From the NCBI GenBank assembly GCA_020137815.1, contig CM035360.1, forward strand, positions 186,001 to 250,000: a DNA stretch of 64,000 nucleotides, written 5' to 3'. This stretch comes from Hormiphora californensis. Taxonomy: Eukaryota > Animalia > Ctenophora. Shown piece after piece: positions 8,301 through 46,200 of this stretch. Below the pieces are notes generated by a model that had not been told where the DNA came from, ran no database searches, and saw only the letters and a list, made by a program, of their open reading frames with translations. Position 1 is the stretch's first letter; each line of letters opens with the position of its first letter. The position numbers were made by a program, and so were the translations under genes.

Positions 8301-11300
8301 CAAAGGTACGTGCTTCAACAACAACATGTGGGGACTGTGAAGGAGTGCTCCAAGACAAATGGACAAAGACCTCCAAGATAAATGTCATTGTTTGTGAATA
8401 TTATTGGTATGAGGGGTGGTGGTCCGGTCATTTTATTTGCCAAGCCATCTCGTTTGTCAATGGCCATGTCCATTGTTTTGGACATGTGTTGAACACTTTT
8501 CCCGCGGCACACACGTGCACTCACATGCAGAGGGAATTAGCGCGCGCGCATTGCACACGGTACTTCCACCTCAGTGAGATTACCGCGCGTGTCAGACAAG
8601 TGGCTAGACGAAGTGTGACAATAATTAGGCCAATAATCAAGGACATTTCTTGTTTTGTTCGGGGCGCGGGGAGGGAGGGTCGAACAAGGCAAGACATTTC
8701 CAGGGACCAGGGTGACTGGTAATTAGGGACACATTTTAGTTTTTACTGCAGGGTGACTGGTTGGAATTGATATATAGTGGGACGTGGTGAATAGGACCCG
8801 ATGAAGGTAACGGCCAAATGAACAAGACAAGAACGGGAGAACATATCAGATAACAGCTCCACGGCAATGACAGATAATATCAAACAAACGTCTAATTTAG
8901 ACTCTAAACAATTGACCTGGCGATAAGTGAAGTCACTCCATAGATTCTCGTTGTGTTCGCTGCCTACTACCAACACTGTTGGAACAGAGAAAAACCACCG
9001 TGCACATAGCAAACACATTTCTACATGTGGCAGAGAGAGAGAGAGAGAGAGAGAGAGAGAGAGAGAGAGAGAGAGAGAGAGAGAGAGGAGAGAGAGAGGA
9101 GAGAGAGAGAGAGAGAGAGAGAGAGAGAGAGAGAGAGAGAGAGAGAGAGAGAGAGAGAGAGAGAGAGAGAGAGAGAGAGAGAGAGAGAGAGAGAGAGAGA
9201 GAGAGAAGGGGAGAGAGAGAGAGGTACCACCAGTTTTTCGTGATGTCCACGATAACGGGGATTAAATCTAGACTAGTAGAATAATCCACAATGGCCGAGT
9301 ACAAATGGATAATAAGATAAATAATAAAAGATACCTAAATAAGTCCTTTTGTAATTGGGTCCCTAAATAAGTAAAGAGAGCTTTTGTTCCCACATAAAAC
9401 CAATATACTGCATTTATATATACTGGTTTACCTTTGGGAGATATTGGTCGGTCCTATAAATAAGTAAAGAAGCCCGTTTGTTCCTCACCCTAAAACCCAA
9501 CACAAATCAACTCGCAATTAAAGGTCAGGGATGAGTTATCCCCCTCGACCCATATTTCCGATTCTCTTCCTATAAAGACAGTGAACCTTTGTTTCAGGGA
9601 AGCATAAACCTATCCATAAAGGAGACTCCCCCTCACGACCTATTTTAAAGCTCAGATAATAATGAGGACCGCCTTAAACCCGAGGGTATCCACCACCCAA
9701 CAACAAATTTCCATTCAATTAATCGGGAGATAGGAGGGTCATCCTTTAGGAAAGAGGTTTCCCTCTATGAAAAATTTTGAAGGGTGATTTTCACCCTAAT
9801 AATGCAGGTGTACCTTAGTATTTTCCCTACTGTGGAACTATGGAAGGGTTTGGAATTGGACAAATTATGAACTATCAAGGTGTTATTCACCTACTAGGGG
9901 TTTGAAACTATGCGAAGGGTGGATTTGATTGCACCTACTAGTGAGACTATGCGAAGGGTGGATTTGATTGCACCTACTAGTGAAACTATGCGAAGGGTGG
10001 ATTTGATTGCACCTACTAGTGAAACTATGCGAAGGGTGGATTTGATTGCACCTACTAGTGAGAACTATGCGAAGGGTGGATTTGATTGCACCTACTAGTG
10101 AAACTATGCGAAGGGTGGATTTGATTGCACCTACTAGTGAAACTATGCGAAGGGTGGATTTGATTGCACCTACTAGTGAAACTATGCGAAGGGTGGATTT
10201 GATTGCACCTACTAGTGAAACTATGCGAAGGGTGGATTTGATTGCACCTACTAGTGAAACTATGCGAAGGGTGGATTTGATTGCACCTACTAGTGAAACT
10301 ATGCGAAGGGTGGATTTGATTGCACCTACTAGTGAACTATGCGAAGGGTGGATTTGATTGCACCTACTAGTGAAACTATGCGAAGGGTGGATTTGATTGC
10401 ACCTACTAGTGAAACTATGCGATAGGGTTGGATTTGATTGCACCTACTAGTGAAACTATGGCGAAGGGTGGATTTGATTGCACCTACTAGTGAAACTATG
10501 CGAAGGGTGGATTTGATTGCACCTACTAGTGAAACTATGCGAAGGGTGGATTTGATTGCACCTACTAGTGAAACTATGCGAAGGGTGGATTTGATTGCAC
10601 CTACTAGTGAAACTATGCGAAGGGTGGATTTGATTGCACCTACTAGTGAAACTATGCGAAGGGTGGATTTGATTGCACCTACTAGTGGAAACTATCGAAG
10701 GGTGGATTTGATTGCACCATACTAGTGAAACTATGCGAAGGGTGGATTTGATTGCACCTACTAGTGAAACTATGCGAAGGGTGGATTGATTGCACCTACT
10801 AGTGAAACTATGCGAAGGGTGGATTTGATTGCACCTACTAGTGAAACTATGCGAAGGGTGGATTTGATTGCACCTACTAGTGAAACTATGCGAAGGGTGG
10901 ATTTGATTGCACCTACTAGTGAAACTATGCGAAGGGTGGATTTGATTGCACCTACTAGTGAAACTATGCGGAAGGGTGGATTTGATTGCACCTACTAGTG
11001 AAACTATGCGAAGGGTGGATTTGATTGCACCTACTAGTGAAACTATGCGAAGGGTGGATTTGATTGCACCTACTAGTGAAACTATGCGAAGGGTGGATTT
11101 GATTGCACCTACTAGTGAAACTATGCGAAGGGTGGATTTGATTGCACCTACTAGTGAAACTATGCGAAGGGTGGATTTGATTGCACCTACTAGTGAAACT
11201 ATGCGAAGGGTGGATTTGATTGCACCTACTAGTGAAACTATGCGAAGGGGGATTTGATTGCACCTACTAGTGAAACTATGCGAAGGGTGGATTTGATTGC

Positions 11301-43200: not shown

Positions 43201-46200
43201 TCAGAGCAATGGCCGGGTTTGTGGTGATATAGGCACACGATAGGCAGAGCTTAGTACCATGTGTGTAGAACTACTTTATGAAAGCTTATAAACTAATAAA
43301 ATGCATTATTTCATATCTACCTATATATCATCTTTAAAAAAGCTATAAATTTTCTATCAAAACTTCTTCTTTTTCTTCTCTAGTCACATGATAATATATT
43401 AGTATCCTGCATGTTGTAAAAAACCCCTAAAAAATAGGGGCCAGCCCCTTTCCCAAAACTCTGTGGGAAATTACCCGGGAAAATTTTCCCTTTGGAATTT
43501 TTCCTAACCCCGTGGACTTAAAGTTTTTTTACTTTAAACATAACTACTTTGGAATTAATTTCAATCTAACCAAAATTTAAAAATTTCTTAAAAGGTTTTG
43601 TTAACCCCATTTCCAATTTTCATAATTTTTTTTTCCTTCGCGGGTCACGAAATAATTAGTAGTAGTCCATTTATGACAAGAGGGTAGACTCTTTCACATA
43701 ATGCCAGCAGTTGTTATTTTAACATTGTAATCTCGTCTGGTTCTGTCCACCGTGCTTGCAATGTCGTACAACTCCTCTAGTCTGTACTCCCTACCAAGTC
43801 TTATCCAGGTACCTGGATAAAATTATTTTTGTTAACGCTGGGGCGATCTTCAGAACGATTCCATTTTTCACCAGAGTCCAGGAACCGACCGAATCATGAA
43901 ATACTGGTCCCTGATTGGCTGATAACCAGTCACGTGACCTAAATAACGATTTCTGATTGGTTGTTTACTTGTGTCGGTCGGTTCCTGCCAGAGTCCCTCA
44001 ATAAACAGCTGTATACCTGGAGAGCAATTCCCATCCACTTTTTCAAGTATGGGCTGGCCGTTACTCGCTGGTTTGGTTGTCAAGTTCTTCAACCAAACAC
44101 ACGACATGGTAGAATTTTTACAGATCGCCAAAGCTGCATTCTTGATGGAACTGAACACGATCCTCAAATCTAACTTGGACTTGCCAATTGAAGATCCATT
44201 GCCCCCGAACTGTGCCACAAAGTAGCAGTAATTGTTGCCTTGACGACCACGAACAACCAAAGCCCAGTGTTCAGCATCCTCGCCAAGTGCTAAATTGGAC
44301 GCTATATTCATGAAGTGTCCTCGAAATGCCCTGCAAGCCCATACTGCCTTGTGAGTGAACACTATGTCCCGCAGCTCTCGTGCCCTTTCTTCAGTCAGTT
44401 CTTGGTCCTCTTTTACTAACTCTTCGTAGCGTGTGTCAAAGAATGTTATAACTCCTTGGTACATTGTGTAGACAACCCCTCCAATAGCGACAAGTGTTGT
44501 GCCTATAAACCTTACCAAATCGAAGGTTGCTTGGGCACTTGACATGTTTTACAGCAAGTATATCAGATTCACCAGCTATATAGTTTAGAGAATATAAGAG
44601 TACAAGCAAAGGACGATTATACAGAAACTAGTGAAAGTGCATCCTATAATAGCCGGCCCATGTATTAGATCATCCAGCATTCTAACTCATGTTGTGAGAG
44701 TTTGATGATATATGCAACACACGTCACGAATATATGCAAAAGGGGCAAAAGTGAATAAGGTTAATGTTTTCTGGTTTAAAATCCTTGTTGTAATGTACCT
44801 ACACAATACATATAGGAGCAATGTTTACCCAACTCCAGCCTCCCCTGGAGTCGCTTGACACTGTATGAACAATTCGCAGCCTTCTCCACATTTATGTTCC
44901 CAAATTCAATCTAAAAATCTGATATAACTTGTTGAGTAATACTCCATACACATTACGCACCAGTTACAGATTGAGACCCTAATATCTGGGCACACGTTCC
45001 TGATGGCCGGGCATGCGGAAGGGTCTGTGGGAACCATGCTGCATTGCTGTGCGTCAAGTAAATTGAATAGAAAGTAGAGCTGAACGCACACGTCACTTGC
45101 CTCCCGGCCATGCATCCTTTGATGCCTGGGAACGAATCTGTAACTGGTCCCTTACAGGCATTCACTTCAACCCGGATAAGACGAACATGGCGGTGAACAG
45201 TTCTCTGCAATTTTACCAGCTCCTCCTACACACCCTGGCTGTGCTTATCTTTCTACTGCCGTTCATCAAGTGAGTATAACACACCCTGGCTGTGCTTATC
45301 TTTCTACTGCCGTTCATCAAGTGAGTATAACACACCCTGGCTGTGCTTATCTTTCTACTGCCGTTCATCAAGTGAGTATAACACACCCTGGCTGTGCTTA
45401 TCTTTCTACTGCCGTTCATCAAGTGAGTATAACACACCCTGGCTGTGCTTATCTTTCTACTGCCGTTCATCAAGTGAGTATAACACACCCTGGCTGTGCT
45501 TATCTTTCTACTGCCGTTCATCAAGTGAGTATAACACACCCTGGCTGTGCTTATCTTTCTACTGCCGTTCATCAAGTGAGTATAACACACCCTGGCTGTG
45601 CTTATCTTTCTACTGCCGTTCATCAAGTGAGTATAACACACCCTGGCTGTGCTTATCTTTCTACTGCCGTTCATCAAGTGAGTATAACACACCCTGGCTG
45701 TGTTTATCTTTCTACTGCCGTTCATCAAGTGAGTATAACACACCCTGGCTGTGCTTATCTTTCTACTGCCGTTCATCAAGTGAGTATAACACATCCTGGC
45801 TGTGCTTATCTTTCTACTTCCGTTCATCAAGTGAGTAGAGCTAAAGATATAATTCAAGATATATTAAAGATTATAATAATAATATTATATGTCTATGGGG
45901 GAAACAGTCGTGCGTGAACCTCATATCACTATCAGGTTCAGGGCACGGCTATTTTTCACTGACACCTGACATCTCAGGTATATAGTGACAGCTAATCCCT
46001 TAAATCTCAAGGAATAGTCGTTACTCAGTGGAGAATAACCGTGGCCACTAGCCTGTACCTGACGTTCAGGCACGACTGTTTCCCCCATTTAATCCATTCG
46101 GTGTGATTTGCCCCTCACAGGGCTAGAGCTGCAGTTAACTGGCACTGAGAGGACGTGATTTGCCCCTCACAGGGCTAGAGCTGCAGTTAACTGGCACTGA

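Follow-up and report, generated by a model that had tools for sequence, protein, structure and literature searches.

In a 64,000-nucleotide window of the genome of the ctenophore Hormiphora californensis (GenBank assembly GCA_020137815.1, contig CM035360.1, forward strand, 186-250 kb from the start of this chromosome-scale scaffold), we found tandem arrays whose repeat unit straddles the edge of an exon. Three of them span splice donors in two neighbouring predicted genes, and a fourth spans the 5' end of one of these genes. The arrays are probably ordinary minisatellites that were born locally and were not aimed at junctions; the boundary-spanning ones would be those that selection tolerates in a tandem-repeat-rich, gene-dense genome. 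An earlier note, made from the letters of the sequence, had reported six junction arrays in four genes and had concluded that the tandem repeats here are amplified exon-intron boundaries. Three of the six (four with the 5'-end array) stood up, and they belong to two genes. The general statement proved too broad, since six of the ten arrays in the two-gene block, as well as arrays outside it, span no boundary.

Three arrays span splice donors in two predicted genes

Gene models were built from reading frames and splice signals, and the exons were joined in scripts to check the frame. All coordinates are positions of the whole window. The models describe two genes:

35417-35534, 37865-37943, 38237-38388 and 38553-38635, + strand: exons of gene 1, all junctions GT-AG
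40295-40631, 40699-40817, 41310-41426, 41736-41868, 45158-45269 and 46700-46880+, + strand: exons of gene 2 (partial), all junctions GT-AG

The exons of gene 1 join to 143 amino acids and a stop codon, without an internal stop. Its predicted product combines a signal peptide with nine cysteines and a hydrophobic C-terminal tail, and by this pattern only it looks like a glycosylphosphatidylinositol (GPI)-anchored protein of the Ly6/uPAR kind; an exon-by-exon Pfam scan gave nothing above threshold. The frame of gene 2 remains open through six exons and five successive junctions, and its translation reads as a multi-pass membrane protein. No Pfam family scored above threshold in an exon-level scan of gene 2, no paralogues of its exons were found in the genome, and one orthologue search with the exon that carries the 83-bp array returned no match. 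The end of exon 1 of gene 2 is independently supported, because the similarity to an 80-amino-acid relative (P0001, on an ENA contig no longer than 1.5 kb, 80% identical to this exon) stops exactly at the predicted exon-1 donor.

Arrays were called with Tandem Repeats Finder (TRF). Three of them cross donors of these genes:

37916-38133, + strand: 41/44 bp × 5.1 (register 4.95), across the donor of gene 1 exon 2
41797-42956, + strand: 83 bp × 14.0 (register 13.98), across the donor of gene 2 exon 4
45228-45837, + strand: 51 bp × 12.0 (register 11.96), across the donor of gene 2 exon 5

The 44-bp unit consists of 28 nt of exon 2 and 16 nt of the following intron, resulting in five identical CAA/GTTAGT sites (the slash marks the exon edge). 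In the 83-bp unit, 72 nt of exon 4 are followed by 11 nt of intron; here the authentic donor is ATG/GTACGC and most pseudo-donors are ATG/GTAAGC, which is closer to the consensus. The unit of the 51-bp × 12 array combines 42 nt of exon 5 with 9 nt of intron and presents twelve identical CAA/GTGAGT sites, with an in-frame TGA at the donor. For these three arrays the claim that the unit straddles a real splice site is borne out by frame-consistent GT-AG models. The earlier note had also pointed out that the intact exon lies upstream of donor arrays and downstream of acceptor arrays. This holds in the verified arrays; it is a geometric necessity and not an extra finding, because any tandem duplication across a boundary gives it.

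Each donor copy was tried in the models. In all three arrays the reading frame stays open with the first donor only, and the downstream copies lead to a premature stop without exception (4 of 4 in the 44-bp array, 13 of 13 in the 83-bp array and 11 of 11 in the 51-bp array). Judged by these reading frames, use of the first donor would be required, as has experimental precedent in the human F7 gene (see below), and products from the other donors would presumably be degraded. The strict choice of first donor and last acceptor that had been deduced for these arrays gains support in this respect, namely for the first donor. Recursive splicing and copy-number tuning of expression, which had been offered beside it, found no support.

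An array spans the 5' end of gene 1

A further array lies at the start of gene 1:

32040-35472, + strand: 70 bp × 49.0 (register 49.04), across the 5' end of gene 1

In its unit, 10 nt with CCCTAG at their end precede a 5-nt leader, the ATG and 55 nt of signal-peptide coding sequence from gene 1. Eight distinct 70-mers are present; the last unit is the commonest one and is predicted to be the functional copy. The array had been described as an acceptor array. It does span the 5' end of the gene, with an AG 5 nt before the ATG and after a pyrimidine-rich tract, and the model contains no exon upstream of it. This AG may be a spliced-leader (SL) trans-splice acceptor rather than a cis acceptor. 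Trans-splicing would be a simpler reading of a unit that combines an acceptor with an ATG. In H. californensis at least 56% of Iso-Seq reads carry the spliced leader (PMC8527503). If the AG is an SL acceptor, the array would lie in upstream RNA that is discarded.

The 3' 24-mer of the published SL has 652 exact or near-exact copies in the genome, compared with 0 for a reversed control. With the SL sequence from PMC8527503, two divergent SL RNA genes were located within intron 1 of gene 1:

35873-35896, - strand: 3' end of the SL, first SL RNA gene
36484-36507, + strand: 3' end of the SL, second SL RNA gene

In both, the SL exon ends in TTTGAG and is followed by GTAAGC. Over the stretches read, the two copies agree, starting about 20 nt before the SL.

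Arrays in introns, in the spacer and in coding sequence

The remaining arrays listed for the two genes and the spacer between them are the following:

36946-37815, + strand: 51 bp × 17, in gene 1 intron 1
39143-40211, + strand: 34 bp × 30.9, spacer: after the stop of gene 1, before the ATG of gene 2
40293-40425, + strand: 36 bp × 3.7, coding, at the start of gene 2
40960-41293, + strand: 21 bp × 13-16, intronic in gene 2
46103-46419, + strand: 52 bp × 6, in gene 2 intron 5

The 51-bp × 17 array lies wholly within its intron and ends 49 nt short of the acceptor, and the 52-bp × 6 array is likewise entirely intronic. Two others had been seen as a whole-exon array and a branch-point-like array that fit the junction pattern, and neither of them does. 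The 21-bp array contains CTAAC motifs and stops 16 nt before the acceptor at 41309 without spanning it. A lone tttcag/ (39134) precedes the 34-bp × 31 array and a lone /gtaaat (40212) follows it; the array thus lies inside a candidate exon and crosses no boundary, and this exon, if real, would be non-coding. An N-terminal coding extension of gene 2 through this array was considered and rejected on account of an in-frame stop five codons before the ATG. The AG located 12 nt before the gene 2 ATG could, as a putative site, be an SL acceptor too.

The 36-bp array is coding and in frame. It holds the ATG of gene 2 and encodes a 12-amino-acid N-terminal repeat, most units of which have an ATG of their own (one unit has ATA). 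Since P0001 has a single copy of the motif, this start-codon-spanning coding repeat appears to be recent.

The gene 2 intron of 3.3 kb in which the 83-bp array lies contains, on the opposite strand, a 225-amino-acid open reading frame (ORF; 43868-44545, - strand). It has no Pfam match and overlaps a copy of a miniature inverted-repeat transposable element (MITE)-like sequence; it could be a gene nested in the intron or the remains of a transposon.

Arrays outside the two-gene block

Three arrays lie upstream of the two genes in the window:

9903-16560: 39 bp × 169.6, 6.7 kb, locus-specific
25873-27570: 34 bp × 49.9, locus-specific
29109-29651: 23 bp × 24

The first two had been counted among the junction arrays, and what points to a junction there is splice motifs only. 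Read on the - strand, the 39-bp unit contains AG/GTGCAA beside a unique open stretch of 27 codons, a putative exon by its motif, and the unit of the 34-bp × 50 array contains the putative acceptor TTTTGTTTTAG/G. The putative exons at the two arrays comprise 23-27 unique open codons; near them no longer ORF and no Pfam match was found. Such motifs alone are no evidence of a junction, because 66-85% of random 34-70-nt segments of the genome hold a comparably good donor- or acceptor-like motif on one strand. The 34-bp × 50 array is located between an ORF for a major facilitator superfamily (MFS) transporter (23526-25091, - strand) and one for a G-protein-coupled receptor (GPCR; 29870-31012, - strand). 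The 23-bp × 24 array lies about 220 nt downstream of the stop codon of the - strand GPCR ORF and is not at a junction.

The MITE-like element is very abundant, with a k-mer depth in the millions, and copies were seen at 23433-23549, 25680-25791 and about 43900-43980. The second of these ends 81 nt from the 34-bp × 50 array. The first extends into the 3' end of the MFS transporter ORF and corresponds to a 117-bp skip in contigs of a second individual; it looks like an insertion polymorphism that touches the last codons of this ORF. A search for sequencing runs that contain this stretch turned up no RNA run, and one possible RNA run, compared over 20100-26099, matched a MITE copy only.

The arrays are unlikely to be artefacts of assembly

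All arrays listed in the earlier note were present in the TRF output with matching periods and copy numbers. Four more were detected (23 bp × 24, 51 bp × 17, 36 bp × 3.7 and 52 bp × 6). The summed TRF coordinates amount to about 27% of the bases of the window, compared with 5% in 200 kb sampled from this genome without selection (see below). A comparison of unit against unit showed that the arrays are mutually unrelated, confirming that their units share no sequence, and in a genome-wide search the 39-bp unit, both 34-bp units and the 83-bp unit had their own locus as their sole site in 110.7 Mb. The idea of a dispersed satellite was rejected on these grounds: the 39-bp unit and the two 34-bp units match their own loci only, and no two units are related.

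The long arrays might in principle be products of assembly or amplification, with true loci of one or two copies. The location of the window near a scaffold start, an assembly gap of 100 N at 48082-48181 and the high share of array bases are in line with such an artefact. Nevertheless, we regard it as highly improbable. Logan contigs of the source sample and of a second individual were compared over 20100-26099, and the bin with the 34-bp × 50 array had a k-mer depth 20-100 times that of its flanks in three of three DNA runs from the two individuals. The ratio varies by run (about 18×, 55× and 96×) and is not a copy count, yet it is incompatible with a locus of only one or two copies, the case that the earlier note had itself set against its reading. 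Furthermore, the arrays contain internal variants and higher-order structure, the copy numbers of the 44-, 83-, 51- and 70-bp arrays are near-integer in their unit registers and their edges are sharp. The published assembly was built with 247× long reads (PMC8527503).

In the same interval, a 15/45-bp minisatellite at 22587-22717 is 81 bp shorter in one contig from the second individual, which suggests that it is length-polymorphic. Immediately beyond the last exon recognised for gene 2 comes a G-rich block of degenerate repeats, 1.2 kb in length (GGGGGAGGTGGT-like, 47000-48280), which abuts the 100-N gap; long TC/AG microsatellites follow the gap.

Junction-spanning arrays compared with chance

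To obtain a local null expectation, each array was collapsed to one unit and segments of the observed lengths were placed uniformly. Within the two gene bodies, three of eight arrays span a cis junction, compared with 0.92-0.97 expected (P = 0.05-0.06). When gene 5' ends are counted in the 31-47-kb block, four of ten arrays are boundary-spanning and 1.17 were expected (P = 0.02), an excess of about three-fold. The intron portions of the three donor units all fall between 9 and 16 nt, a mildly non-uniform distribution that is not significant (Fisher-combined P ~0.15). These three observations weigh against an origin without regard to junctions. The local excess is suggestive only, because the window was chosen for its pattern of junction arrays. 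The null expectation is also lowered by two long introns that are full of inserted elements (two SL genes, a MITE and the nested ORF).

For comparison we drew an unselected sample of 20 × 10 kb from ten chromosomes of the same genome. It contains 49 arrays per 200 kb. Among the 25 that are not of low complexity there was no excess of consensus donors (GTRAGT 0 versus 1.1 expected, GTRAG 2 versus 3.6 expected), a comparison of low power. The gene context could be resolved for three sample arrays. One lies 430 nt past a stop codon, one is intronic and starts 22 nt after the donor, and one (32 bp × 18) spans an acceptor: its units end in CTCCTAG/TTGTTG, and the exon begins in phase after the last copy.

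In one sample gene, two successive short introns are each taken up for the most part by a single minisatellite (24 bp × 18 at L025:7559-7982 and 32 bp × 18 at L025:9230-9808; G000:C4:4007559-4009808). With these two arrays the introns measure 572 and 642 nt instead of about 170 and 95 nt. By weak exon-level Pfam matches the gene is probably a TOG/HEAT-repeat gene of the XMAP215/ch-TOG kind.

Local birth and selective tolerance are the probable explanation

The earlier note had left open whether amplification is biased to splice junctions or random and filtered by what selection tolerates. The second alternative fits best. Each array would go back to a short segment of 20-85 bp duplicated in tandem, and would then grow by replication slippage or unequal exchange. 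If this segment lies across an exon boundary, one of the copies would stay joined to the exon, the first one at a donor and the last one at an acceptor or a gene 5' end, and the extra copies would fall into the intron or into discarded upstream pre-mRNA. The coding sequence would be unchanged as long as the exon-proximal site is used, and boundary-spanning arrays would be tolerated because an intact exon copy remains at the array edge. Out-of-frame arrays inside exons, on the other hand, would be removed by selection. The scheme would apply to the 44-, 83- and 51-bp donor arrays and to the 70-bp array at the 5' end of gene 1, and the remaining arrays would be plain intronic, intergenic or in-frame coding minisatellites. 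According to TRF, 13% of the H. californensis genome consists of tandem repeats, and the species has many nested genes and a high indel heterozygosity in non-coding DNA (PMC8527503).

A mutational process that is itself biased to exon boundaries, such as breakage or template switching that is linked to transcription, to R-loops or to splicing complexes at exon ends, would account for the local excess, for the narrow range over which the donor units reach into the intron and for the finding that one of the three sample arrays with resolved context spans an acceptor. We nevertheless consider it unlikely, if possible. The numbers are tiny and come from a window selected for the pattern, most arrays are located away from boundaries, the 200-kb sample did not yield a consensus-donor excess within its low power, and the phase bias is not significant. 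Moreover, selection against exon-internal arrays and short ancestral introns (mostly 67-309 nt) raise the share of boundary-spanning arrays that is to be expected without any bias. Very unlikely, in our judgement, is a function of the arrays as splicing elements, be it as decoy or reserve sites that tune expression, in the timing of recursive splicing or in generating protein isoforms of different repeat number. It is true that pseudo-donors are identical to the authentic site or nearer to the consensus (GTAAGC versus GTACGC), that the lengths of the 39- and 36-bp units are divisible by three and that the 36-bp array is coding in frame. However, every pseudo-donor in the three verified arrays leads to a premature stop, and regular splicing is unaffected by such repeats in amphioxus and in most human cases. 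The units within an array are 96-99% identical (TRF), so the arrays are young or rapidly homogenised, and the single 36-bp unit in the 80%-identical relative argues for fast turnover and not for conservation.

Boundary-spanning repeats in other animals

Arrays of this kind are known from other animals. Tandem repeats that span exon boundaries were named 'mirages' in the amphioxus Adh3 gene (Canestro et al., 2002, as cited in Ebner et al., 2010, PMC3087553). They also occur in the amphioxus globin genes Gb6 and Gb9, at 5' and 3' boundaries, where they leave splicing intact, and they have been proposed to lead to intron gain (PMC3087553). In the human F7 gene, the first monomer of a 37-bp variable number tandem repeat (VNTR) in intron 7 (IVS7) spans the junction, and the most upstream donor alone is used (PMC1557585). 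Other human cases are IFI6 (6-16) intron 2 with 25 pseudo-sites, the 31-bp repeat in CBS IVS13, LMNB2 and PDGF (PMC1557585). The 44-, 83- and 51-bp arrays described here and the acceptor-spanning sample array at L025:9230-9808 share the features of the mirage and F7 type: a head-to-tail unit of 10-160 bp made of exon and intron at a junction, and an authentic copy at the array edge that is contiguous with the rest of the exon.

Like the Hormiphora arrays, amphioxus mirages are boundary-spanning minisatellites with the authentic copy at the edge; their units measure 10-160 bp and they are found at both types of boundary. Homogenisation is weaker at their edges than inside, and the Hormiphora 83-bp array shows the same. 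In amphioxus the repeated AG and GT signals leave splicing normal. The Hormiphora arrays differ in belonging to the ctenophore phylum, in copy number (12-49 compared with 3-6 in the amphioxus globins) and in that one array spans a start codon together with a putative trans-splice site. In the human junction VNTRs, too, the authentic donor precedes identical pseudo-donors (4-25 copies), and the most upstream one is normally used. The human examples are isolated cases in a large genome for which splicing data exist; in Hormiphora several such arrays lie within 10 kb of a compact genome. Intron gain at AGGT proto-splice sites (PMC3087553) is similar in that duplicated splice signals add intronic sequence, but the Hormiphora arrays only lengthen existing introns. 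Boundary arrays swell these from about 120-600 nt to 0.3-3.3 kb. Our literature search found no paper describing boundary-spanning arrays in ctenophores. The arrays are a new example of a mechanism known from amphioxus and from human F7, IFI6, CBS and LMNB2.

Should the birth of minisatellites truly be biased to boundaries, through a process coupled to transcription, cis-splicing or SL trans-splicing, which we think improbable, then introns and the 5' ends of genes would, as a rule, be lengthened by copies of the splice sites they contain, and choosing one out of tens of identical sites would be routine for the spliceosome. Boundary-spanning arrays, if common genome-wide, would provide many natural test cases of splice-site choice, with 5-14 identical donors and up to 49 identical candidate 5'-end acceptors. 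Some of the authentic sites are weaker than their own copies, and public Iso-Seq and long-read data exist for the species. The arrays also illustrate how an intron that starts out short can become several times longer through duplication of its ends, which bears on intron expansion and on the high non-coding indel heterozygosity reported for H. californensis.

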